Source: Macrostomum lignano (Eukaryota). From it: a stretch of DNA of 64,000 nucleotides. The notes below the pieces were generated by a model that saw nothing but the letters and a program-made list of their open reading frames with translations, was not told the origin of the DNA and made no database searches. Shown in pieces: positions 79 to 50,866 of the stretch (the stretch's first letter is position 1; the number at the start of each line of letters is the position of its first letter). The stretch is taken from NCBI GenBank assembly GCA_002269645.1, contig NIVC01000110.1, positions 186,001 to 250,000 on the forward strand, in the 5' to 3' direction. The position numbers and the translations under genes were made by a program.

Positions 79-858
79 TTATAGGCTGCCGTCTGAACAG
101 ATTTCCAACCATTCCCTCCACTGTAGAACGGTTCTCTCAATTGATAAAAGTAAATACGCCGCTAGGAGCCCCCGGTTGCTGCTGCGCGCTTCGTAAAGAC
201 AGTTGAGATATGTGTCTCTATTTGCATACGCAAATGATACGGGTTCTGGCAGAATCCGGTTGATCAACTTTGATAATAACAACCTAGCAGTTCTACCATT
301 GCCGTCGCTAAAGGGGTGTATGGTGAGAAACTTTTCTAGGAAATATGCTCCTGTCACTACTGCATCACGCAAGATTTGTGGCTCTTTTATGTCTCTAGTT
401 AATTTTACCAGCTGCCGTTCAATATTTTCTGGGGCACTGTAATACATACTCGCGCCTGCTGGCTTGGCGTGCTTAATTCTATACGATCCTGCATTCGGGA
501 GCAGTCCTCTGCACACGCGTGTGTGAACTTGTCTAACAAACTCTGTGTCAATTAACCCCCTCGTGTCATTGAGGTGTATTGCCGCACTCCATAGATTGGC
601 TGTGACCATACAGGACCGGGTTTTTATCGCTTCTTCTGCTTCCTCCCAAGTCAACGCCACCTCTCTCTCCTCAATGTTTACTTCAGTTACGAATGCCAGC
701 CGGGCTAGATACGTGAATTCTAAGCGCTCCTTTGCGGTCAATCCCTCGATTCTTTTCCTAGTGTCTGATAACAATCTTTCAATGAGGGGTAATCTGGCGC
801 GCACGCTCTCGTTGCTGAAATAGGGGTTATCAGTTATACCCTCTTCCATGTTCTCCAT
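79..858 (-). CDS. Stand-alone Fic/DOC-domain protein (putative AMPylase), intronless
   Basis: Uninterrupted ORF with an intact Fic motif, HPFSDGNGRTAR (consensus HxFx[D/E]GNGRxxR), preceded by the typical 'VHTRVCRGLLPNAGSYR' segment. First ATG at 858; the track starts at GTG 876. AATAAA directly follows and overlaps the TAA stop. No TM or TPR region as in metazoan FICD. Confidence 0.92.
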   Translation of the reverse strand: MENMEEGITDNPYFSNESVRARLPLIERLLSDTRKRIEGLTAKERLEFTYLARLAFVTEVNIEEREVALTWEEAEEAIKTRSCMVTANLWSAAIHLNDTRGLIDTEFVRQVHTRVCRGLLPNAGSYRIKHAKPAGASMYYSAPENIERQLVKLTRDIKEPQILRDAVVTGAYFLEKFLTIHPFSDGNGRTARLLLSKLINRILPEPVSFAYANRDTYLNCLYEARSSNRGLLAAYLLLSIERTVLQWREWLEICSDGSL

Positions 859-1360
859 ACAGAGGGTTTTGTACACTGCTTCTATTTATGGTTGCATTAA
901 CACGTTGCTCGCGGCCTGTCTGTCCCTCTGCAGCCTGGGGGGCTCTCTATCACTCACCGCCGGTCTGTCCCTCTACCACCCCGGCCTGGGGAAGCTCTCT
1001 GTCCCTCCGTGTGACTCACACTCCCTCTCTGTCCACGCCGCGTGCTGCGACATGCCAGGGCAGCGCAGGGTGCCTCCACGCACTCTCTGTCCCAGCACCC
1101 CGTGTCTCTTTGTACCCCACCTCATACTGCTACAGGGGTCGCCTGTTATCTGTCCCCTGCTACAGGGGGATGGCGGCTCTCCACGCACTACCCCTCCTGC
1201 TACAGGGGCTGCTCTCTGTCCCCAGCTACAGGGCTGCTCTCTGTCCCCCGCATGGGGGGCCGGTTGCTCAGTGTACAGGGCTGCGTCAGCATCGGGGGTT
1301 TCCTTCCTACACTAACCGCGTGCACACGACATTGGTGGGAGGGGCGGGAATCCCCCCGCC

Positions 1361-3906: not shown

Positions 3907-23044
<19,138 letters not shown>

Positions 23045-32102: not shown

Positions 32103-33135
32103 TTATACCGCATATTGTTTGTCAATTAAATATGAGCTGCCTTTGGCTTTGAAAACGAAAAAAGAATTTAAGTTACACCTGAGCGCCATGCCAGTCGGCA
32201 AAGCAGGAGGCTGCGCAAGTCCAGGGTTGCCTTCACATGAGCCGCAGCAGAAGACGGTTTTCTTGGCCTGGCCGTTCCTGTAGCACTGCCTGCACCGCTT
32301 CGTTGGTCGGGCTTGCGCTTCGGTGGCTTCAAAGCGCTTCAGCGCTTGATGATGGTCTCCAGAAACTTTAAAAACTCCAGTGTACGTCCGCACGATCGGT
32401 ACACAACCCAGCCGTTTCTGGCCAGTACAAGAAAAAGGTGCGCGCCGAGCTTTGTGGGCCACTTCTGAGTCCGCCGGCATGGGTTGTATGGCTGCAAGGC
32501 AGAGTCCAGCTTGTCGAAACCACCCATAAATTTGTTGTACGACACATGACTGTCTGTTGCTTCTGCAGGATGACCAGTTCATTTTGCACGATTCGGTGAA
32601 CAAGGTGAAGTCTTGCGTGTCAAGGAAGTAAACTTTCTTTAGGCCCGAGCTCTTCCTGTCAACTATTTTCAACGCTAGCACGTTTCCTTTGCGCATAAAC
32701 GTGCAGCTTGGAGCTTGGTTTCCCTGGATACCACGAAGGCCATCTGGGACACCGCGATCGGCGCGAACTGTGCATGTCAGCAGGGTGAACCGCTGCAGCA
32801 GATACCTCGTACATCGCAAGACGATAAGATCCGAACCAGCTATCACAGAAGACGAGATAACCTAAATCCAATACGCACCTAACTGCCTCAACCAGGACTT
32901 TCTCACTCAGAGACAGCCCCCATGCACCCCCGAGACCTTGACCGAATCGCTCATTCTCAGCTCTACTAGAGTGCACTAAGAAGTTGCTGAAGTAACCGAA
33001 TCTAGCTTTGCAAAGAAAATACAGTTTGATGCCATATCGCGCTTTCTTGGATGGAATATATTGACGAAACATGACGCGACCCCTGAACAGGACTAGCTCT
33101 TCGTCGACACTAATTTCTTTTTCTGGCATGTACAC
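32103..33135 (-). mobile_element. Decayed piggyBac transposase (DDD core plus C-terminal Cys-rich domain)
   Basis: Motifs: YMPEKEISVDEELVLFRGRVMFRQYIPSKKARYGIK, FCDSWF, YNKFMGGFDKLD...Y...RRTQKWP.K, RC..C......T...C..C. Needs frameshifts near 32820 and 32550 and has an in-frame stop near 32345. (GACA)n lies immediately 5' and no TIRs were found. Confidence 0.9.
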
Positions 33136-33227: not shown

Positions 33228-33964
33228 TTCAGTGACTCCACAAGTGGACTCACACAAGGACTTCACGGGGATCCTGGGAGTGATAGACTGAGTCATGGTC
33301 AACATCAGATCAAACATCAAATTTTCGTTCCTCGCTAATCTTGCTTTTTGCAAATAAAATTAATTGATGTTGACTAAGCATAAGCATAATCATGAGCATA
33401 ATAAGCATAAGCAGCTTAAGAATAACATATTTTACGGTTATTCTGTGTTGGCGCCAATTCAAGTTAACGTGGCAGTAAAACAATTCTCAATTGTGCGCGC
33501 GAATTCAAAATCTTTTAAGAATTGAGTGTAGCAAATTTGTCTAAGAGACTCATCGAGATTGAGATTTAGCTACTTTGTATCCTGAGGCTAAGATGCAATG
33601 CTTTAACCCTGCCATTGCTTTAAAGGCCAGTAAAAGACGAAAAGACCACCCAGAGCAATAAAACTTCGGTAAGGAATGAAAAATTCGTCAATTCTATTCA
33701 ATAAAAGAGTTACAACTCACCCCTCCGAGTCCAGTTGCAATTGTCTGCAGGTGCACACAGCTACACAGAGCCCCAATATGCTCATACTCGTATACATGCT
33801 CATCATTCTCAGCAGTCCGCATTCATTTAAAGTCCGACTCCATCCTCTGCACACATCAGTGTACACTTCGCTTCACAACGGAAGGCGTTCTTCCGTCACT
33901 CGGCAACCGCATTCAGTTTATGCAAATTTAAATTCGAGTTCGCTTTTCATTTTCGCGTCAAAGC

Positions 33965-35930
33965 CCAGTTCGCTCGGCTTGAATCATTTGCAAAAAGCAG
34001 CTGAACGACCCGGCCTTGGAGACAATAAGAGCCAGATCGGGCACACAGTCACTGTGCGGTAAGTGACTGACAAGTCGTGCACTTTTATCGTGCATTTTTG
34101 TTGGGGAATCTCAAGGAACGATCGGGCATCTCAGGGCACATCTCACGGGGGTCATAGCTTCTTTTTTTCAGCGACGTTACCGGCTCACCACGCTCGGATA
34201 TTCAAACTGAATAGGAAAAGTGCTTCACTTGAATAACTTTTTAAGAAGACAATAAGAAAGGCTCGTGTAGAGATGAGGAAAGAGTTGTAAGTGACGCTGC
34301 TTTCTCGTTTTATCCTCTGAGACGCGCCATGGAAGGGACCTCGATGAGGTGTCTCGGCGTTTCTAGACGACTTGAATCAGCCCACCTTTGGGCTCCATTT
34401 CAGTGCATGAGTTCACCTAATTTTCCTTTTTCCCTAATTTTCATTTCCACAGCCATTATATAGTTTGCTCACCTTCAACAAGCTGGTTAAGTGACACAAC
34501 TGAACGATCCGGTCTTGGTGCCAATAAGAGGTTCTGTCGCGTCGAAGGGCGCACAGCGACTGAGCGGTAAGTGACTGACAGCTGGAGCACTCTTATTTTT
34601 GTGCTTCTGTTGCTAAATCTCCTCTGGGGGACAGTTTCAGGTAAAAAATCTCATCGAGCCAAGTTGCATGTGAACGGATATCAGGGAGCCAATTAGTCTC
34701 AAATGAGGGGCCCTCAGGTAGTCAAAGTTGATGGCTTATCAGGGGAACAGTCTAAAAGGGAAGCAATGACTTAGGTGAGGGGATCACAAAGGGAACCAAG
34801 ACACAGTGAGCGGCTCCTAAGGGGATCAAAAGCTTATGTGAGGGATTTCAAGGGGTGTAAAGACTCTTTGAAAATCTCAGGGAATCCTAGGGAGAGCCTT
34901 GTCTCCCTGAGATTGCATCACCTGAGTATTTTCTCCCCTTTAGATCCTCAGTTAAGAATTTGATCCCCTTAAGAGCATTCATTCTGTCTTGGTAACCTTT
35001 GAGATCCCCTCACCCGTGTCTTTGATCCATATGTGCACTTCAACTTTGCTTTGGTTTTCTTTAAAGATTCCTCACTTGAGCCTCTGCTGTTCTTGACATC
35101 CTCATCCCCTCACTTGAGCCTCTGCTGTTCTTGACATCCTCATCCCCTCACTTGAGCCTCTGCTGTTCTTGACATCCTCATCCCCTCACTTGAGCCTCTG
35201 CTGTTCTTGACATCCTCATCCCCTCACTTGAGCCTCTGCTGTTCTTGAAATCCTTATCCCCTCACTTGAGCCTCTGCTCTTCTTGACATCCTCATCCCCT
35301 CACTTGAGCCACTGCTCTTCTTGACATCCTCATCCCCTCACTTGAGCCTCTGCTGTTCTTGACATCCTCATCCCCTCACTTGAGCCTCTGCTGTTCTTGA
35401 CATCCTCATCCCCTCACTTGAGCCTCTGCTGTTCTTGACATCCTTATCCCCTCACTTGAGCCTCTGCTCTTCTTCACATCCTCAAGGACTACTTAAGTAT
35501 ATACGTTGCTTTAGTTGTCCTTGGACGTCTTTCTTCTTGAAAAATTCATAATTCAACATTGAATTCAAATCAAAACTACACGTTTCCACTGATTACGTAC
35601 AAAAGTGTATCATTTCTGAAACTCAGCGGCAACGTCAAATCGTGCCAATTTAAATTCTCACCGTAACTTTCTTTTTTACACACAGCAGCTGAAGTTTTCT
35701 CGCCTTCAATAAGCTGGTGACACAACTAAACGCGGTCTCGGTGCCAACAAGAGCCTTCTATCGCCCCCAGGGCGCACAGCGACTGTACTGTAAGTGACTG
35801 ACAGCTGCTGTGCTCTTATTTTGACATTTCTTTTGGCGAATTTCCAGTGGGGACAGTTTCAGGTGTAAAAATCTCATGGAGTCAAGTCTTAGGTGGTGGA
35901 ACGTCAGGGAGCGGAATCTCAAGAGGAGCA
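33965..35930 (+). other. Three dispersed homologous exon-like modules (probably non-coding/5'UTR exons)
   Basis: Copies at about 33965-34130, 34452-34720 and 35686-35930 share CTGAACG..CCGG.CTTGG.G.CAATAAGAG...GGGC.CACAG..ACTG..CG|GTAAGTGACTGACA. Copies 2 and 3 are preceded by polypyrimidine-CAG acceptors. Confidence 0.6.
35071..35485. repeat. 38-bp minisatellite
   Basis: Unit CTCACTTGAGCCTCTGCTGTTCTTGACATCCTCATCCC, about 11 copies (starts at 35071, 35109, 35147 and so on). Confidence 0.95.
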
Positions 35931-36909
35931 GTCTTAGTAGGTGCGGGGATTTCAAGGGGAGCTAAGACTGAAGTGAAGGGATATCAAGAGGAGCAAAAGT
36001 CTCAATTGACAGGATCTAAGGGACTAAAGACTAAACACGGGACTAAAGACGGGATCTAAAGACTCAGATGAGGGAATGTCAAGGGGAGTAGAGACTCAGT
36101 GAGGAAACACAAGAAGAGCAATGACTCAGATAAGGGAATCTCTATATAGTAGAGCGAAGAAACGGATGAGGGGATCTTAGGAGAGCAAAGACTCAGGTGA
36201 TGGGACATCAGGGAGCAAAGTCTAAGGTAGGAGACCAAAGACTCAAATGAGGGGATGTTAAGGGTAGCAAAGAAGCAGGTGAGGGGTATCAAGGGGTACT
36301 ATCAGGAGGCAAACAATGCCACCAGTTACCCAATATTTAGGTTGTAGCAATTGAAGCAAAATAAAGACATGCTAACAATTGCTTGTACACCTTTTTTCGA
36401 TGCAAGCATAGGAAAGGCTTAGGTGTTGAATTTATTTCAACGTAAGGCCTTTCATTTTGAACCAATTTACCGTGACGGATAAATGACCGTGAGAGGTTTT
36501 TATGATCACTTATTCGCTTAAAATATACTAAAAAATAAACAAAGTTCAAATGCAAAGAAAAAAGAAAAGCGAAACCTCTTCATCGCGTTTGCTTAACCAC
36601 TCAGCCCTATTTTTTCTGTCCTGGTTCGGGGCATGTCCGGTTCGTCTGCGTCATCTGCGTCAATCAGTGCGGCCCCCTGGCCTATCACGTATTCTCTACC
36701 CTGCGCTTGTCCTGATTGGCTGTTGAAAGGATCAAGTTATGGTGGTTTGGTAGGGGCGGATCCAGGGGGTGGGGGAAGAGGGCCATGCCCCCCCTCAGCC
36801 GTGGCCAAAAAAAATTTAGCCATACTTTCTTGGCCGGTAACTTTTTTGGCCAAGGTCTATTTTTTAATGTTTGGTTGTAGTTGCTTGGTATACATGTATC
36901 TTGCTCCCC

Positions 36910-38480
36910 AGACCTCTGATTACACAGACCTCTGATTACACAGGCCTCTGATTACACAGGCCTCTGATTACACAGACCTCTGATTACGAGCTACACAGAC
37001 ATCTGATTACGAGCTACACAGACCTCTGATTACACAGACCTCTGATTACACAGACCTCTGATTACACAGGCCTCTGATTACACAGACCTCTGATTACACA
37101 GGCCTCTGATTACACAGGCCTCTGATTACACAGGCCTCTGATTACACAGGCCTCTGATTACACAGGCCTCTGATTACACAGGCCTCTGATTACACAGGCC
37201 TCTGATTACACAGGCCTCTGATTACACAGGCCTCTGATTACACAGGCCTCTGATTACACAGGCCTCTGATTACACAGGCCTCTGATTACACAGGCCTCTG
37301 ATTACACAGACCTCTGATTACACAGGCCTCTGATTACACAGGCCTCTGATTACACAGGCCTCTGATTACACAGTCCTCTGATTACACAGACCTCTGATCA
37401 CACAGGCCTCTGATTACACAGGCCTCTGATTACACAGACCTCTGATTACACAGGCCTCTGATTACACAGACCTCTGATTACACAGGCCTCTGATTACACA
37501 GGCCTCTGATTACACAGGCCTCTGATTACACAGGCCTCTGATTACACAGGCCTCTGATTACACAGGCCTCTGATTACACAGGCCTCTGATTACACAGGCC
37601 TCTGATTACACAGGCCTCTGATTACACAGGCCTCTGATTACACAGGCCTCTGATTACACAGGCCTCTGATTACACAGGCCTCTGATTACACAGGCCTCTG
37701 ATTACACAGGCCTCTGATTACACAGGCCTCTGATTACACAGGCCTCTGATTACACAGGCCTCTGATTACACAGGCCTCTGATTACACAGGCCTCTGATTA
37801 CACAGGCCTCTGATTACACAGGCCTCTGATTACACAGGCCTCTGATTACACAGGCCTCTGATTACGAGCTACACAGACATCTGATTACGAGCTACACAGA
37901 CATCTGATTACGAGCTACACAGACCTCTGATTACACAGACCTCTGATTACACAGACCTCTGATTACACAGACCTCTGATTACACAGGCCTCTGATTACAC
38001 AGGCCTCTGATTACACAGGCCTCTGATTACACAGGTCTCTGATTACACAGACCTCTGATTACACAGACCTCTGATTACACAGACCTCTGATTACACAGAC
38101 CTCTGATCACACAGGCCTCTGATTACACAGGCCTCTGATTACACAGGCCTCTGATTACACAGGCCTCTGATTACACAGGCCTCTGATTACACAGGCCTCT
38201 GATTACACAGGCCTCTGATTACACAGGCCTCTGATTACGAGCTACACAGACATCTGATTACGAGCTACACAGACATCTGATTACGAGCTACACAGACCTC
38301 TGATTACACAGACCTCTGATTACACAGACCTCTGATTACACAGACCTCTGATTACACAGACCTCTGATTACACAGACCTCTGATTACACAGACCTCTGAT
38401 TACACAGTCCTCTGATTACACAGACCTCTGATTACACAGACCTCTGATTACACAGACCTCTGATTACACAGGCCTCTAAT
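36910..38480. repeat. 16-bp minisatellite, about 1.6 kb
   Basis: Unit CCTCTGATTACACAG(G/A), about 95 copies with occasional GAGCTACAC inserts. Confidence 0.97.
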
Positions 38481-39329
38481 TACAGGTCCCTCGATCTGAG
38501 TGAAAGAATTTTAAAGTACATGTAGCCTTCTGGCCTGAGGGTATATCGTCTCCTCTTGTTGCAAAGATGCCTATGATAGTCTCCGGTCTGCTGAAGAGGA
38601 CCCCCGACCACGGAGGCTGCCACCACCCCTTCTGAGCAGACGTACCGTCATTCCTGTAGCGACTTCTGCCCTCCTTCAGTTCACCTACCTTGCACTCAGT
38701 CCATTACGAGCTAGTCTGTCGGCCCGTGCTGTCTCATCTCGTGTCGACTTGGCCCGTGCTGTCTCATCTACTTGTCGCTCACCGTCTACTGGGGGTGCGT
38801 CCAGAAGTGTCGTCCGGTCTTCCCAGTTCCAATTCTCTGCCAGGGGCGCTTCAGGGCACAGCTCGCCGGATCGTCTCATTCATTCGTCATTCGAAATTTA
38901 TCTCTTTCCATCATACTCACAATGTAAGAAATTAATTTTTTAAATTAGGGGGTGGGCCGTCCGTCTTGCATAATTATCATATCATTGCATAATGTTACGG
39001 TTGATTCAATTTGACCCAATTCACATACTGTAATACTCGTTGCTAATGTAATATGCAACATGCTCTTTTTGTTTATTGCGTTCCCCAATCCTCAAATATA
39101 CTCAAAAAGATGTTCCGTGTTTGGAGATTGTGTAGCGACTTCAGTTCACCAATCACCTACCTTGTACTTGCTAGACTACTAAGAGTGGCCTCAGGGAATT
39201 TGAACTCTGATGATCAGATGATCAATGTGAGTTGGGTCCTGTATCCAGGCCCCTTAAAATAGATAGTTCAGGCCTTCTAATGCTGAAAGATCTATATTAA
39301 TAATAATAATACCAATCCATTCGCTAACC

Positions 39330-41782: not shown

Positions 41783-44700
41783 ATGGACCAAGTATTTAGT
41801 TCCACTACATCCATCGACGAAGGTACAGAGTTTCTGTCACGCATTGCCACTGAGGAGGACAAGCAGCAGTTCTTTGCTCTGAGCAAAGACGGGAGTAGTG
41901 CTGTTAGCAATGCTTTTGAAAAGCTCGATTTAAACACACTAAAAAACGTTACTGAAAAGCTCGGTCTGCAGCAGTGCCTAGCTGATAAAACTGCTAAAAA
42001 TCAAAGTGTCTTGCACAGAGCAGCTTTCAATACCACGAATCCACAAGTGTTTCTGTGGCTCACTTCCATTGTTGGGGACAAGCAGCAGTTCTTCGCTCGA
42101 GACAGTGACGGCGTCAGTGCTGTTAGCAATGCATTTTCTGAGCTGGATTTAGAGACACTACAGCAAGTGACTAAAATTTTTGGTCTTCCGCAATGCCTAG
42201 CTACAAAAACTGCTAAAAATGAAAGTGTCTTGCATAGGGCAGCTTTCAACGCGGAAAACCCAGCAGTGTTTCTGTGGCTCAGTTCCATTGTCGAGGACAA
42301 GCAGCAGTTCTTTGCTCTGGACAATTACGGGTACAGTGCTGTTAGCATTGCATTTTCTACTCTAGATTTAGCCACTTTAACAAAAGTGACTGAGAAGCTT
42401 GGTCTTCAGCAATGCCTGTCTGCAAAAACTGCTAAAAATCAAAGTGTCTTGCACAGAGCAGCTTTCCGGAAGGCTAATCCAGAAGTGTTTCTGTGGCTCA
42501 TTGACATTGTCGAGGACAAGCAGCAGTTCTTTGCTCAGGACTATGGCGGCTTCATGGCTGTTAGCATTGCATTTGAGAAGCTGGATTTGATCACATTAAA
42601 AAAAGTGACTGACAAGCTTGGTCTGCAACAGTGTCTGGCAGCAAAAACTGCAAAAAATGAAAGTGTCTTGTACAGAGCAGCTTTAAATGCTGCGAATCCG
42701 GCAGTGCTTTTGTGGCTCCTTTCCATTGTTAAGGACAAGCAGCAGTTCTTTTTTTTGAACGATCATGGGTACAGCGCTGTTAGCGCTGCGTTTTTGAAGT
42801 TAGATTTAGACACATTAAAACAAGTGACTGAGAAGCTCGGTCTGCAGCAGTGCCTGGCTGCAAAAACTGCTAAAAAACAAAGTGTCTTGCACAGGGCAGC
42901 TTTCAACACGAAGAATCCGGCAGTGTTTCTGTGGCTCATTGACATTGTCGAGGACAAGCAGCAGTTTTTTGTTCTGGACGATTTCGGATACAGCGCTGTT
43001 AGCGATGCATTTTCTTTTCTAGATTTAGACACATTAGAACAAGTGACCAAAAAGCTCGGTCTTCAGCAATGCCTGGCTGCTAAAACAGCTAAAAACGATA
43101 GCGTCTTGCACAGGGCAGCTTTTAACACGGCGAAACCGTCAGTGTTTCTGTGGCTGATTGCCATTGTTGAGGACAAGCAGCAGTTTTTTGTTCTGGACGA
43201 TTTCGGATACAGCGCTGTTAGCGATGCATTTTCTTTTCTAGATTTAGACACACTAAAAGAAGTGACCAAAAAGCTTGGTCTGCAGCAGTGCCTGTCTGCA
43301 AAAACTGCTAAAAAACAAAGTGTCTTGCACAGGGCAGCTTTCAACACGAAGAATCCGGCAGTGTTTCAGTGGCTCACTTCCATTGTCGAGGACAAGCAGG
43401 AGTTCTTTAATCGTGATATTGATGGGAATAATGCTTTGCATATCGCTTTTCGCCATCAAAATACGACAACACTGAATTACCCAATCGAGAAATTTGAGTT
43501 GACAAAATGTCTGACTATTGATAATCATCTGCAGCAAACCCAATTTTATCTTTCTGCTGTCAATTGTACTCATCCAGATGTTTTTCGATGGCTATTGGAT
43601 CGAGTCCAAAATAAGGATCGACACGTTTTGTTTGATTTTTTTAAAACGGACTCTGAAGGCAATAGTATGTTACACGCAGTGTTCATAAATCTGAACCCGT
43701 TCTGTGATTCAGATGGATTACAGCTACTCATCGATCGCATAAAATGTCTTGTTGATAATGGCGTTGATCCTGCAGCTGAAAACAAGCAGAAGCATAATTG
43801 TTTTTTTGCTTCAGTGGCCAGTGAAATAAACTTGAAAGAAGCTTTGGACGCTCTTATGACGTCTTCTCTTGCAAAGGTTTTTAAAAGCCTCCAAAGAAAC
43901 TCGGAAGGTATGCACGTGACTCACGTTTTTTGCACAAAGTACGAGCTTCCGATGATTGCAGACGAGTTAAGCAGGCTTTGTGGTCTCAGTCTTGAAAAAC
44001 TTTTAGATGTTCGAGTCGCCACCGGTCCATTTAAAGAGGCGAAATGTTTGCACTTTGCCTGCGAATGTGGCAAAAAAGAAAACATCAAATATCTTCTAAA
44101 GCATGATGCGAAACTGGAGGATGAGACGGCAGCTGGGCAGACGTGCGTAGATTTTGCCTGCAACAAGGAGATGCTCGAAGTTCTTTTTGAGCTAGCAGAT
44201 GACATCAATGAAATTCCAAAAGAGAAGTCATTTACCCTTAGAGAACTGCTCAAGTTAGTGGATGTTGCAAAGAGGGCACTCAAACTTCCTGACAAACAGA
44301 GTGCACGGAATTACTTGACTCAGTTCAACGACTCCTCGCTCAAGGCTAGCATTGAAGATGACATGAAAAAAGGACAAGAAGCTGGCATGATGCCAAAGTC
44401 TGAAGAATCTGCAGAAGTTCAGATGCTGTTCAGAGCCTTCGAGCTGGATTCAACGGAAATGCTGCGCAGCTTGATCAGTTTGGGCTTTGCCATCGATGAG
44501 ATTGATGAGCAGTTTTCTCTTCATATTTTAACCCAGATTCGTAAAAACCAGCAAGGTTCAAAGTCTCCCATAATAGCGACTCTGCAGCAGTTTTTCTCAG
44601 AGCGAGACAGAAATTCAAAAACCCTAGTGCTTATGGAATATGCTATACTGCTCGAGAAACCAAAGCTTTTAACCGACCTCATGCTGCTGCCTCAATTCGA

Positions 44701-46922
44701 CATCATCCCTCAGACCCTGAGGTTGCTTATTTATTTAAAGCTGAACTTCAGGTCAAGTAAAAGCGAAACTATGCAGAAGGTGCAATTTCGAGCGTTGAAT
44801 GTTGTCGTCAACATCCTGGACCATCTCTATGTTGATGGCGATGAAGATGATCGGAAAAATCTCTTCAACTACCTGACTGGCTCGTTTTGTACTTCAGGTA
44901 AACAGTCTGCTGCTGGGCCGAGGTTTCTGCCACCAATTGAATCCGTTTCTCGACCTGCGAAGAAGCCTTCAAATGAAGTTGATAAAGAGTTTGTGTCAGT
45001 CATGCATCTTGTGGAGACTCTGGACTGTGACGACTTGTTCGCGACTGACTGCATCAGCAATTTGGTAGATCAGCAGTGGAAAAAGCCTCCACCGTTGCCC
45101 TGGAGCAGCTCTCCGCACTGCTGCACCGGCAAGCGGCCTGAAGGTGCAACAATTCAGCAGAGATATGTAATACATGCCGTCTCTTTCCTGCTCTTCCTGC
45201 TCTACTTTGCCTGGTACGTGACGGACTTCAGTCGGACCAAGCAGTCTCCAGTTCCAGACATCATCCTGCTGTCGTACGCACTGTCCTTCACTCTGCAGGA
45301 AATCAATGATTTTCTAAACAATATGTCTCTGAAGGACGTGACAATTTTTGGCCGCCATCTAAAGGTTCCAGGCTACTTCACGGACCTGTTCAACTACTTT
45401 GACATGGCTGGGCTGCTGCTGATGTGGGCAGGTCTGGTCCTGAAGCTGCGCGGCGAGCTCACCGGCCCCATCCTCCTACGCAGCAGTCAGGTTGTGCTCA
45501 GCGCCTCATTTCTGCTACTGGGATTCCGCTCTGTGGCCCTGCTCAGCTACTTCAAAGTCACCGGGCCGAAGATCAATATGCTCAAAAGCTTGCTGTTCAA
45601 AGACCTGCTGCCATTCATATTGATCTTGCTGGTGCTGGTGTACTCATTTGGTATCTTTTTCTTCAACCTGCTGTTTCCGGCTTTCTCAGACTCAAGAGAT
45701 GCTCAGGCTCTGACAAAGGTGTTCACCGTACCCGTGTCACTGGCGTTTGGGATCTTCGAAAGCGTGATTTTCGAGTCCTGCAATCCTGGCACGCTCGCAA
45801 CTGGGAAGAACTTCCTTCCAAATGAGAAGCCCTGTGCGGATGAAGAAGGAAAAAGGGCTTACGATGGAATTCTGATGTTCGTGTACCTCCTTCTGGTGAA
45901 CATCGTGATGTGGAACCTGCTGATCGCGCTGTTCAGCCGCACTGTGACGAAGTTGGCGAGCAGAGCGGAGGTTCTGTGGCGCAAGAATCTGTTCGAGCTG
46001 CTGCGGGAGTTCGCGGAGGTCAGTCCAGTTCCGCCGCCGCTGTCGTTCCCGCACTACGCCTGGAAACTGCTGCGGAGGTGTCGGTGCGAGCGGCGCTCCG
46101 GCAGAGTGGGACCTGACGGTTCTGAGGTAAGGCCACAGCTTAGCCAATATTGTCAAGTCAGACTTTTCTCGTGTACAGAAGCAGAGTAAGTTACTTTTCT
46201 TTATTTCGGATAGGAAAAGCTCTTCGTATTTTCTTATACTTTGTGGAACTCAATTTATTAAAAAGATTGATTACGCTTGAAGCAGCTAGGTTTATCGTCG
46301 ATGAAATTAAAGTCTTACTTAAATCTTTATGTGATTTGGCATTATAGTTAGAATAAAAAATTCACGATATTCACAACGTACATCGTACTGCTTACATCAA
46401 AAGTGTACCTTTGGCTGACTGAGTGGCCCGTCTAGGTCTTCTTTGGCTATGATAAAGCGTATGTTTCGGTGACTGAATGCATTTACGAAATTTTGGTTAA
46501 AACAAAAACCTAAGTGCACTAAACTTTTGACTCTCCAGCCGTGGTGGCAGAACAAAAAAGACTTCAGCGGCTACCCAGAAGGCTACAAGCGTTTCCTGAT
46601 TTACCAGGCCAAACGGCTGCGGGAGCACCGGCCCCGGCTGCAGCGGCCTGTGGAGAGGCACAAGGGCGACACCGATGTGCTCAAGGCGCACGTAGAGAAC
46701 CAGGCCCAGGACTTGCGGGATGATGTGCTCACTGCTCAGAGAGAAGATAATGCGAGAATTGAGGCACACTTGAAAGACTCAATTGACTCAATTGAAACTC
46801 AATTGAATGAAAAAACTGAAGAAATTCGGCAACGGCAGCGAAAGCACAGAAGGAAAACGAAGAAGCAATTGTCCGAGATAACGAACATGTTGAAGCAGAT
46901 GCAGCAGCAGATGCAGCGGTGA
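41783..46922 (+). CDS. TRP-family cation channel: N-terminal ankyrin-type tandem array plus TRPM-like TM domain and C-terminal coiled coil, about 1575 aa
   Basis: Exon 41783-46126 (donor GAG|GTAAGG) joins exon 46539-46922 (acceptor TCCAG|) in frame. Seven 219-bp (73-aa) units start at 41858+219n. Further ankyrin motifs (CLHFACECGK, TCVDFA) and six hydrophobic helices: 'YFTDLFNYFD', 'GPKINML', 'NIVMWNLLIALFS', TRP-box-like 'LWRKN', 'SPVPPPLS'. An in-frame stop lies 12 nt upstream of the ATG, but an upstream exon via the CAG at 41774-41776 is possible. Confidence 0.9.
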
Positions 46923-48529
46923 GGAAAATTGTCAAGGTTGTCCAATTTATACACAAGGACCACTAGGAACACTTCACAAGTCTAGTAGTCCTTGTTTATA
47001 CACTTGCGTCATTTAGGAATGGCACACGCTCAAAACTCTTGCGGAGCAAATAGCTTACGCGCATTCGAAGCAAAGGTTATTTTAGGGTTTTTACGAGAAA
47101 TTTGGGCCGTATTGCAGCGCAGATTTCATCACTCTGTTTCAGCTTTCAAATAGAATTAAATTGTAATTTTTTTGTCAATTTCCAGACTTTCGGACTCAGC
47201 ATGCAAATGAGCAGCTCGTGTTTTCTGATGGTCGTCATTATCTCCACAGCAATTTCTAATTAATCACACGAACATCGATCGCTTTATGAGCAAATCTGCC
47301 ATCTTCTGCCAAATTTTCGTGAGAGCCCTCAGAACCTCAGCCGTTTTTACAATAGGCTGCATTGACTATTTTAGAAATGGCTATAATACTCTGCTGGTGA
47401 TAGAAAGTTACAGAAAGTATAACTGCTACCAATCAGAAAGCTATTCAAAATTTATAGACACTTTCCGTTATTTCACGAACAAATTTTGTAAAAACAAAAC
47501 ATCTACATCGGGACTTTATTCGGTGATGTAGAGTATTATCCCTGAAAATGTTTTTTATCCATAATTTATGTGAGACGAAACATGCCTTTTTAGGATTTTT
47601 TATCAAGAACTGTTTTCCTTTTTAATTCATAACCTTGCTATTTGATTTTTATTTTTACTGGAACGAAATTGGTAAAAGCCTCTGAATCTTGGAGAATCGA
47701 ATTTCACGTTGCAGTTGACAATGCTTTGGTCTAAATGTAGGCACTGCTGTTGCCGCTCGATGTCGGCTGTGAAAGTCGTGCACAGACACGCGGTCGTAGC
47801 CGGTCTCGAAGTGCAACCGCTCTGAAGCTTGCAATAGCTCGTAATGGCGTAGTCATCAAGGGTCTCTGATCGTGGCGCAGCAATCCAGGTTTATTTATAA
47901 TTACAGGGTATCATTTTCAATGTCATAAAGTGCTCAGAATTCCGGGCATATGCACCGTGTCGATTCGTAGCCCTCTAGAGCACCCAGTCACACTCGCTCG
48001 CCTTAGGTTATTGTTCTGATGATAATTGTCCTTCTGTTGCGTATGTCACTGTTTTAACTGGCAAGGTTATGAGTTCGAGCGGAACATTTCCTTATTTTCT
48101 TACCATGGCATCATTAGTGCTCCACCAGCTGCTATGTTTGAAATCTGTATTGAACCAATACTGTGACAAATATTCTATCAAGTGAAACAGAAAATCCTAT
48201 ATCAAGTGATTACATGAAACTCTTCTGGACTCGCTAATTACGTCCTGAGCTCTTTTAAGTCCTGACCTATATGAGTGATCCTTTTCTGGAAACTCAATGA
48301 CCTGCAGCGAAAGCTTTGATTTTGGGTCAGTGTTGGATACTTACTGTTAAGCAAAGCTGGAATTGCTTTTTTAAAATCAGAGAGCACAGTGTACTTCCTT
48401 GTTCTGCTACCATGCTTCTTTTTGTTTAGTTTTTGTTCCTTTATTATTGCTCGTGCATATCAGTGACACTAATATTATGTGAGATTTTTTTAACGCCCTG
48501 TTTCTTACATGTTTTCGGAAATGTTCCGT

Positions 48530-50230
48530 TGCTAACACGTTATTGTGAATGTTCCGTTGCTAACATGTTTCTTTGAATGTTCCGTTGCTAACACATTTTT
48601 GTGAATGTTCTGTTGCTAACACGTTTTTGTGAATGTTCTGTTGCTAACACATTTTTGTGAATGTTCCGTTGCTAACATGTTTCTGTGAATGTTCTGTTGC
48701 TAACATGTTTTTGTAAATGTTCTGCTGCTTGCATGTTTTTGTGAATGTTCTGTTGCTTACATGTTTTTGTGAATGCCCTGTTGCTTACATGTTTTTGTGA
48801 ATGCCCCATTGCTTACATGTTTTTGTGAATGTTCCATTGCTAACACATTTTTGTGAATGTTCTGTTGCTAACACGTTTTTGTGAATGTTCTGTTGCTAAC
48901 ACATTTTTGTGAATGTTCCGTTGCTAACATGTTTCTGTGAATGTTCTGTTGCTAACATGTTTTTGTAAATGTTCTGCTGCTTGCATGTTTTTGTGAATGT
49001 TCTGTTGCTTACATGTTTTTGTGAATGCCCTGTTGCTTACATTTTTTTGTGAATGCCCCGTTGCTTACATGTTTTTGTAAATGTTCTGTTGCTTGCATGT
49101 TTTTGTGAATGCCCCGTTGCTTACATGTTTTTGTAAATGTTCTGTTGCTTGCATGTTTTTGTGAATGTTCTGTTGCTTACATGTTTTTGTGAATGCCCTG
49201 TTGCTTACATTTTTTTGTGAATGCCCCGTTGCTTACATGTTTTTGTAAATGTTCTGTTGCTTGCATGTTTTTGTGAATGTTCCGTTGCTTACATGTTTTT
49301 GTGAATGTTCTGTTGCTAGCATGTTTTTGTGAATGTTCTGTTGCTTACATGTTTTTGTGAATGATCTGTTGCCAACATGTTTTTGTGAATGTTCTGTTGC
49401 TCAAATGTTTATGTGAATGTTCCGTTGCTTGCATGTTTTTGTGAATGTTCTGTTGCTTGCATGTTTTTGTGAATGCCCTGTTGCTTAAATGTTTTTGTGA
49501 ATGTCCTGTTGCTTGCATGTTTTTGTGAATGTTCTGTTGCTTGCATTTTTTTGTGAATGTTCTGTTGCTTGCATGTTTTTTTGTGAATGCCCTGTTGCTT
49601 AAATGTTTTTGTGAATGTCCTGTTGCTTAAATGTTTTTGTGAATGTCCTGTTGCTAACATGGTTTTGTGAATGTTCCGTTGCTTACATGTTTTTGTGAAT
49701 GTTCCGTTGCTAACATGTTTCTGTGAATGTTCTGTTGCTAACATGTTTTTGTAAATGTTCTGCTGCTTGCATGTTTTTGTGAATGTTCTGTTGCTTACAT
49801 GTTTTTGTGAATGCCCTGTTGCTTACATGTTTCTGTGAATGCCCCGTTGCCTACATGTTTTTGTGAATGTTCCGTTGCTAACATGTTTCTGTGAATGCTC
49901 TGTTGCTAACATGTTTTTGTAAATGTTCTGTTGCTTGCATGTTTTTGTGAATGTTCTGTTGCTTACATGTTTTTGTGAATGCCCTGTTGCTTACATTTTT
50001 TTGTGAATGTTCTGTTGCTTGCATGTTTTTGTGAATGTTCTGTTGCTAACATGTTTTTGTGAATGTTCTGTTGCTTGCATGTTTTTGTAAATGTTCTGTT
50101 GCTTGCATGTTTTTGTGAATGTTCTGTTGCTTGCATGTTTTTGTGAATGCCCTGTTGCTTAAATGTTTTTGTGAATGTCCTGTTGCTAACATGTTTCTGT
50201 GAATGTTCCGTTGCTTACATGTTTTTGTAA
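48530..50230. repeat. 28-bp minisatellite, about 1.7 kb
   Basis: Unit GTGAATGTTCTGTTGCT(AA/TA/TG)CATGTTTTT, about 60 copies. Confidence 0.95.
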
Positions 50231-50866
50231 ATGTCCCACTCTACTCACATGCTTTTTGGTAAAGGCCCCGCTACATACATGGTTTTTTATATATGTCCTA
50301 TTTCTTACATTTATTGTTTTTTGAAAGCTCCGTATGTAGCTTGTATGTTTTTATCTTGCGATACACCATTAATTTTGATGTTATTTTTTTCTTGTCATAG
50401 ACAGTTAACTTAGTTTTTCTTTTGGAGAGCGCAGCAACAAAACTATGTAAAGCCAATAGCATGCAGGGCATGTTTGTTATTATTTTTCTATTTTTTTAGT
50501 CATTGATAGTTTTTTCAAAGCATCTAAATCATTTAAAACATTTCAAAGAGATTTCCATTTACAAAATGAACTTTCAATTATCGCTATATTTAAAAACAAC
50601 TATTTATCAAAAAATTGCCTAATCATACTATCGTGCTACTCAAGTACTCGAATGTCTAAAACATTTCTTTGCTTTCGATTTAAGCTTTTATTTAAAAAAT
50701 AATAAAAAGTTTTTAAGACTTGACTGGATCAAGCAGTAATTACTTAGAAGTTAAGAAACTTTTTAGTTCCGTGTTTTATTTTGTTATTTTACACTACTGG
50801 TGGTGTTTGAAGTGTTTAAATAGTTTTTTTAATCGAAACCAATTACATGAGAAAAACCACTCGCTG

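Follow-up and report, generated by a model that had tools for sequence, protein, structure and literature searches.

A tandem array of ankyrin-like units in a TRPM-type channel gene of the flatworm Macrostomum lignano

The window analysed here is a 64,000-nucleotide stretch of the genome of Macrostomum lignano, a free-living flatworm (contig NIVC01000110.1 of assembly GCA_002269645.1, positions 186,001 to 250,000, forward strand). It contains a gene for a TRP-family channel whose N-terminus includes a tandem array of seven units of 73 amino acids (aa) each. Sequence comparison and structure prediction indicate that the pore and TRP helix of this channel are TRPM-type, as its pre-S1 linker probably is, with an ankyrin arm in place of the SLOG domain, and that each unit is a pair of very divergent ankyrin repeats, A and B. 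Units 5–7 are statistically supported mosaics, and it is established that variability within the array is concentrated on one predicted surface of an otherwise constrained module, where change proceeds at a near-neutral rate. The array is probably a cytoplasmic ankyrin solenoid at the N-terminus of a cation channel that is TRPM-type and specific to flatworms, and it probably serves as an arm that binds partners or regulates the channel. TRP channels with an ankyrin arm, and tandem ankyrins with a variable binding face, are both already known kinds. The combination of a TRPM-type pore with ankyrin repeats was not found described in the literature that we searched, and the same literature yielded no description of an ankyrin-bearing TRPM in flatworms or in Macrostomum.

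The channel gene and the predicted fold of its units

The array lies within the longest open reading frame (ORF) of the region (41783-46189, forward strand, 1468 codons), most of which is exon 1 of the channel gene (Table 1). This exon encodes, in order, a short N-terminus with only 25 residues ahead of the array, the ankyrin array, more ankyrins, a helical linker, the S1-S6 pore domain and the TRP helix. Exon 2 encodes a conserved ‘PWWQN..YPEGY..FLIYQA’ segment (motif WW..YP..Y..FL.YQA), followed by a charged helical tail that is probably a tetramerising coiled coil. The product, of ~1576 aa, matches the M. lignano protein P0001 at 100% / 99.8% identity, and its close relatives all come from this species. 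Compared with the closest paralogue, P0002 (locus L001), the non-repeat part of the gene has a synonymous divergence (dS) of ~0.24 and a ratio of nonsynonymous to synonymous change (omega) of 0.39, falling to 0.31 in the transmembrane domain. Hence, the gene is functional and under purifying selection.

The public gene models treat the array in different ways. In the P0001 model, 885 nt (43217-44101) are removed as an in-frame ‘intron’ with GT..AG ends, and the P0002 model is without one unit that is present both in the genome (L001) and in P0004. The string GCT-GTT-AGC occurs in every unit and could act as a splice donor. The parts of the array that are spliced out in P0001, P0002 and P0004 are either prediction artefacts or real array-length isoforms. 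The P0001 model also has an upstream ‘exon’ that matches 33862-34089 (forward strand) at only 88%. A spurious extension or a repeat is the probable explanation, which leaves the true 5ʹ end of the channel gene uncertain.

Assignment of the pore to the TRPM family is based on both sequence and predicted structure. A phmmer search of the PDB with the transmembrane region gave TRPM4 as the best match (1e-19), with TRPM3 and TRPM2 also found, in the range 1e-19 to 1e-14. TRPM1 to TRPM8, including TRPM5, TRPM7 and TRPM8, are among the sequence matches of the channel region. The best 60 are all TRPMs except for one algal TRP-like channel, 6pw4, and NOMPC is absent from these 60. For an AlphaFold model of aa 560-1448 (predicted local distance difference test, pLDDT, 75), Foldseek placed TRPM3/TRPM4 at the top, with 630-880 aligned columns, and NOMPC (5vkq) third. 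The structural alignments to TRPM3/TRPM4 reach 300-550 columns upstream of S1.

The likeness to TRPM4, TRPM3 and TRPM2 covers S1-S6, the pore-helix FG motif, the S6 motif ‘NLLIALFS’, the TRP helix followed by PPPL (the motifs being common to both sequences in the TRPM4 alignment), and probably, judging by predicted structure, the pre-S1 helical layer. In contrast to these channels, the window channel is without SLOG/MHR1-2, the ligand-sensing domain that defines TRPMs, and a long ankyrin solenoid of canonical fold is predicted there instead. Pfam gave no match to SLOG (MHR1/2; LSDAT_euk), and a phmmer comparison with the SLOG regions from two canonical TRPMs gave none either. The Pfam TRPM2-like domain (PF25508, MHR3/4) was not detected in the window channel protein; two more distant relatives of the ankyrin type, P0039 and P0042, do have it. 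The only Pfam domains found in the protein are ankyrin and Ion_trans, with no nucleotide-binding oligomerisation domain (NOD; NACHT/NB-ARC) and no death-fold domain.

The repeats themselves are real. Tandem Repeats Finder reports a single array (41826-43408, period 219, 7.2 copies, 80% matches, score 1751), and the motif DKQ[QE]FF occurs at 41858 and then each 219 bp, eight times in total. A first-pass annotation of this DNA had described seven highly similar double-ankyrin units in an exact 219-bp period from 41858 to 43450. The period, the in-frame 73-aa units (starting at 41858+219*i, with no indels) and the unit peptides quoted there are all exact. The units are real repeats, but their similarity is only moderate (pairwise identity for units 1–7 of 76-90% at the nucleotide level and 68-85% at the amino acid level), and an end at 43450 cuts through a degenerate eighth unit that shares 33-37% aa identity with the others.

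That the units are double ankyrins, as had been proposed, agrees with comparisons of profiles and of structures. A profile built from 23 units of three paralogues aligns with consensus ankyrin in hhalign at 96% probability (E 2.5e-9), over two consecutive repeats, such that unit positions 9 and 45 correspond to ankyrin position 1 of repeats A and B, respectively. The same profile, used in an hmmsearch of the PDB, retrieves espin, TRPA1 and designed ankyrins. An AlphaFold model of aa 1-680, with pLDDT 80-93 across aa 40-500, has two helix pairs per unit and short helices at DKQQF and GLQQCL. Its top Foldseek matches are the 24-repeat domains of ankyrin-1/ankyrin-B, tankyrase, and designed ankyrin repeat proteins (DARPins). 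Together with unit 8 and ~5-6 further repeats, the arm would comprise roughly 22 ankyrin repeats, ending at about aa 830. By homology to TRPM channels, the seven-unit array is expected to be cytoplasmic, and hence would make no direct contact with external chemicals, ligands or pathogens.

Table 1. Features of the channel gene (positions in the window)
Feature	Position	Strand	Basis or remark
Exon 1 of channel gene	41783..46126	+	1448 codons; longest ORF; P0001 match; GT donor at 46127
Unit 1, predicted double ankyrin A+B	41858..42076	+	in-frame 219-bp period
Unit 2	42077..42295	+	in-frame 219-bp period
Unit 3	42296..42514	+	in-frame 219-bp period
Unit 4	42515..42733	+	in-frame 219-bp period
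Unit 5	42734..42952	+	3ʹ part nearly identical to 3ʹ part of unit 7
Unit 6	42953..43171	+	first 81 nt identical to unit 7
Unit 7, mosaic	43172..43390	+	5ʹ third matches unit 6; nt 106-195 match unit 5
Unit 8, degenerate terminal	43391..43609	+	positionally orthologous to terminal unit of paralogue, 76% nt
~5-6 further non-repetitive ankyrin-like repeats	43610..44272	+	aa 610-830; helices in model; approximate boundaries
Helical linker before S1	44273..45151	+	aa 830-1123; common to ~30 family representatives; aligns structurally to TRPM3/TRPM4 MHR3/4 region
S1-S6 domain, pore helix with FGI filter motif, TRP helix (LWRKNLFELLREF...PPPL)	45152..46015	+	Pfam Ion_trans; phmmer TRPM4; helices in model m63205d6187ba
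Intron, GT...AG	46127..46535	+	tblastn of P0001/P0002; canonical splice ends
Exon 2	46536..46922	+	tblastn of P0001 and P0002; ORF 46527-46922; stop codon at end

Exchange between units and the site of variation

Sequence has been exchanged among the last regular units. Units 6 and 7 do not differ at all in nt 1-81 and differ at 23 of the other 138 nt (Fisher P=1.5e-5; 0/300 site shuffles); between units 5 and 7, a single difference falls in nt 106-195, against 26 in the remaining 129 nt (P=5e-6). The sharing of first halves by units 6 and 7, and of second halves by units 5 and 7, had been noticed before and attributed to unequal crossover. Recombination is supported, but formation of unit 7 by one unequal crossover is rejected, because the hybrid would then sit between its two parents and the observed order is 5, 6, hybrid 7. 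The order is better accounted for by gene conversion, alone or after a duplication.

The window units are old, since their synonymous divergence from one another (~0.47) is above that between the two paralogous genes (0.24, window versus P0002), and recent exchange is confined to units 5–7. Furthermore, no positional orthology is seen between the window units and those of the L001 paralogue, except for the terminal degenerate unit (76% nucleotide identity). This is classic concerted evolution with escape at the edges, in which unit 8 was spared homogenisation.

Where in the module do the units differ? The positions tested were set beforehand as ankyrin positions 33, 2, 3, 5, 13 and 14, the six positions randomised in DARPin libraries; these line the groove in which ankyrins bind extended peptides. 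In the units they correspond to positions 8, 10, 11, 13, 21 and 22 (face A) and 44, 46, 47, 49, 57 and 58 (face B). Nonsynonymous differences per site (pN) on face A of the window array reach 0.52, a value attained by 0/20000 random six-codon sets (P<5e-5), with synonymous differences per site (pS) of 0.47 and omega 1.2. On face B, pN is 0.12 (pS 0.38, omega 0.24), with no enrichment (P=0.64), and three of its positions (44, 46 and 47; K, A, K) show no variation. For the rest of the unit, pN is likewise 0.12 (pS 0.33, omega 0.29). Hence, the proposal that variation falls at predicted binding positions is correct for repeat A, but not for repeat B. An explanation in which face A codons are simply older was rejected, as their pS (0.47) does not differ significantly from that of the rest of the unit (0.33; P=0.19).

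Counting the minimum number of changes gives 22 nonsynonymous and 6 synonymous events on face A of the window array, an omega of ~0.9, as compared with 0.37 for the rest of the unit (Fisher P=0.046). Purifying selection acts on the scaffold and on repeat B. The rate on face A is equally explained by relaxed constraint, and positive selection is not established.

Repeat number differs among the paralogues, as had been anticipated: there are 7+1 units in the window gene, and 5+1 and ~11+1 in the other two. The L001 units are mutually 87-97% identical and differ mainly on face A, for which pN is 0.32, pS 0.11 and omega 3.7 (permutation P=2e-4); the corresponding minimum-change counts are 8 nonsynonymous and 1 synonymous, an omega of ~2.1. 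An omega above 1 on face A is not significant in either the window or the L001 array (binomial P 0.71 and 0.40, respectively). The array of P0003 (locus L002), with ~11 regular units, has face A conserved as ‘DPDEDGES’ (pN 0.15, pS 0.58, omega 0.15; not enriched, P=0.59). Constraint on face A in P0003 implies that these positions can matter.

The array resembles ankyrin-R/B and DARPins in two respects: ankyrin-1/ankyrin-B (24 repeats) and DARPin fusions are among the structures that match its model, and its variable positions coincide with those randomised in DARPin libraries. It differs from them in that only every second repeat is variable, in that the units are too divergent for the Pfam ankyrin models, and in that the model has short helices (DKQQF, GLQQCL) in place of beta-hairpins.

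Distribution of the family

Both the pre-S1 linker and the pore are shared by ~30 proteins (E<1e-30) among the 1.84 billion representatives scanned with HMMER; beyond those, matches are to the pore only. Among the best 155 representatives, the nearest ~50 are ankyrin-type where the N-terminus is known, and SLOG-type TRPMs come next. M. lignano accounts for dozens of 50%-identity clusters of ankyrin-type members; further members are from two flukes, Opisthorchis and Dicrocoelium, and a tapeworm, Schistocephalus. The parasite channels that combine ankyrins with a TRPM pore are P0101/P0195 (Schistocephalus), P0029 (Opisthorchis) and P0050 (Dicrocoelium); the Schistocephalus ankyrin-type protein is automatically annotated as ‘TRPM7’.

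A rough neighbour-joining tree of the pore domain, midpoint-rooted, divides these proteins into three groups: ankyrin group 1, a Macrostomum expansion that includes the window gene; ankyrin group 2, with members from Macrostomum and parasitic flatworms; and the SLOG TRPMs. With no outgroup and no support values, this tree does not decide between ankyrins as the ancestral state and a domain swap. Members of group 1 outside the three-gene subclade that contains the window gene also have a period of two repeats (69-77 aa), with 30-42% identity, so the A+B module is ancient in the family. Arrays of 73-aa units with high identity are limited to the subclade.

Surveys have found TRPM and TRPS to be without ankyrin repeats, and this absence is treated as a hallmark of the TRPM/TRPS branch (PMC7306681). 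Flatworms are unsampled in a 2026 survey of TRPMs (PMC13143021). Channels with a TRPM pore and a long ankyrin arm across flatworms are relevant to the timing of ankyrin loss or regain in the evolution of TRP channels. The family also extends to flukes and tapeworms, in which TRPM channels are drug targets.

Two sets of database entries call for comment. A 1537-aa, apparently intronless member of the family (P0012/P0162; NCBI MEE4247282.1), on a contig of 5106 bp, is deposited under a ‘Kangiellaceae bacterium’ metagenome-assembled genome. The contig is almost certainly mis-binned animal DNA, and its source is probably a flatworm-like species. The models of P0007 (2076 aa), P0018 and P0029 have two channel bodies per protein. 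These are probably tandem paralogues fused by gene prediction, a hint that the family lies in tandem clusters.

Proposed function of the arm, and the surrounding DNA

How might such an arm arise and work? We propose that the solenoid was lengthened through tandem duplication of the 219-bp, two-ankyrin module, and that internal units would keep exchanging sequence by gene conversion and/or unequal crossing-over, with the terminal unit excluded. Selection would hold the scaffold and the groove face of repeat B, while groove residues of repeat A change at a roughly neutral rate, so that each unit may show a different patch along the concave groove. By analogy with ankyrin-B/R, the groove may bind a cytosolic protein or an extended peptide, and the bound state could reach the gate by way of the helical linker and the TRP helix. 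Each paralogue would then have a different input, owing to changes in its unit number and its face A.

Several points weigh against this proposal. Binding by the groove and gating of the pore by the arm are predictions rather than observations. The neutral-like rate on face A (omega ~0.9) is what would be expected if nothing bound there. Moreover, the sister paralogue P0003 conserves the same positions; hence, a variable face is not a rule of the family. Exposure of the variable residues depends on the ankyrin register, and the Pfam models Ank, Ank_2, Ank_3, Ank_4 and Ank_5 gave no match to the seven-unit array, even at E<=1; the Pfam ankyrin match in the protein is limited to aa 751-809, downstream of the units.

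The main alternative function for the arm is mechanical: it could be a gating spring or a tether to the cytoskeleton, similar to that of NOMPC, with unit number setting its length and compliance and with face A unconstrained. We regard this as somewhat unlikely. As in TRPN/NOMPC, a very long N-terminal ankyrin solenoid, predicted to have ~22 repeats, lies directly upstream of a TRP pore and is joined to it via linker helices; Drosophila NOMPC ranks third among the structures that match the C-terminal model; change on face A is close to neutral in rate; and the paralogue arrays differ in length by whole two-repeat modules. However, by sequence the pore is TRPM-type rather than TRPN-type, as the composition of the best 60 PDB matches makes clear. 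NOMPC has a tightly conserved set of 29 repeats; in the window family the number ranges widely among paralogues, and the two-repeat modules have high internal identity. In addition, the strong conservation of face A in P0003 shows that these positions can carry function, and the 25 residues before the array leave little room for a separate tethering domain.

The first-pass annotation had favoured a diversifiable recognition array like those of fungal NLRs, wired to an ion channel as a candidate innate-immune or chemosensory receptor. Such an array would be under diversifying selection, would be polymorphic in unit number and would signal by ion flux. The same ORF does encode a TRP pore domain, as that proposal requires, and the family is greatly expanded in one free-living species. 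Fungal NLRs with ANK, TPR or WD40 repeats likewise combine high internal identity, recombination between units and variation on the binding face. The mosaic units, the concentration of variation on the ankyrin binding face, and the L001 array, with its pairwise omega of 3.7 and 8:1 events on face A, are all consistent with such a receptor. In contrast to fungal NLRs, the output module here is an ion channel and there is no NOD or death-fold domain; identity between the window units is lower; and omega does not significantly exceed 1 in either array. The window units are substantially diverged (dS ~0.47) rather than freshly shuffled, high-identity arrays occur in one subclade of three paralogues only, and the array would be cytoplasmic. 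The interpretation in that annotation is thus partly supported, but the receptor itself is speculation. Nothing that we found points to an immune or chemosensory role, and we consider it quite unlikely.

The TRPM-type lineage of flatworms with ankyrins instead of SLOG may be a sister of TRPM/TRPS that kept its ankyrins, or may stem from a domain swap. A fuller reading adds that in one Macrostomum subclade the arm has become a modular, recombining recognition ‘reader’ with diversifying groove residues and polymorphic unit number, as in fungal NLRs, wired directly to an ion pore; this reading as a whole is also unlikely, though a little less so. If the face did prove to be under diversifying selection, the array would offer one of the few animal examples of intracellular recognition by shuffled repeats.

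It is very unlikely that the locus is an artefact or a decaying gene, that is, a repeat collapsed or expanded in assembly, or a pseudogene drifting neutrally. The window is very rich in satellites and public models treat parts of the array as introns, as might be expected of such a locus. However, the reading frame runs uninterrupted over 1448 codons, spanning 1.7 kb of repeats and 2.6 kb of unique DNA, and is followed by a canonical intron and a conserved exon 2; omega relative to the paralogue is 0.39; and P0001 agrees with the window gene in units 1–6, in their order and in the first part of unit 7, but for a single amino acid. We therefore rejected both a pseudogene and an assembly artefact.

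The array is a natural experiment, as channels that are otherwise alike differ in its module number and groove residues, and its modular structure lends itself to experimental work. Exchange of arrays among the paralogues could therefore reveal the share of the ankyrin arm in TRP gating. M. lignano is amenable to RNA interference and transgenesis.

Outside the channel gene, the window is mostly satellite DNA, found at 13678-17888, 36909-38484, 48498-50234 and many other places. The satellites include a 20-mer x210 (GC skew about 1), a 16-mer x98 and a 28-mer x62, and long satellite ‘ORFs’, such as that at 13570-17970 on the reverse strand, are repeat artefacts. Two overlapping ORFs at 32103-33135 (reverse strand) resemble a frameshifted piggyBac-type transposase (‘...YMPEKEISVDEELVLFRGRVMFRQYIPSKKARYGIKLYFLC...’), as identified by eye; the Pfam scan covered their 247-aa downstream piece (32103-32846), which is not the one that bears the motif, and gave no match. 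At the edge of the window, a 265-aa ORF (79-876, reverse strand) has a Fic/DOC domain (Pfam E 7e-14), and may be part of a Fic-domain (AMPylase-type) gene.

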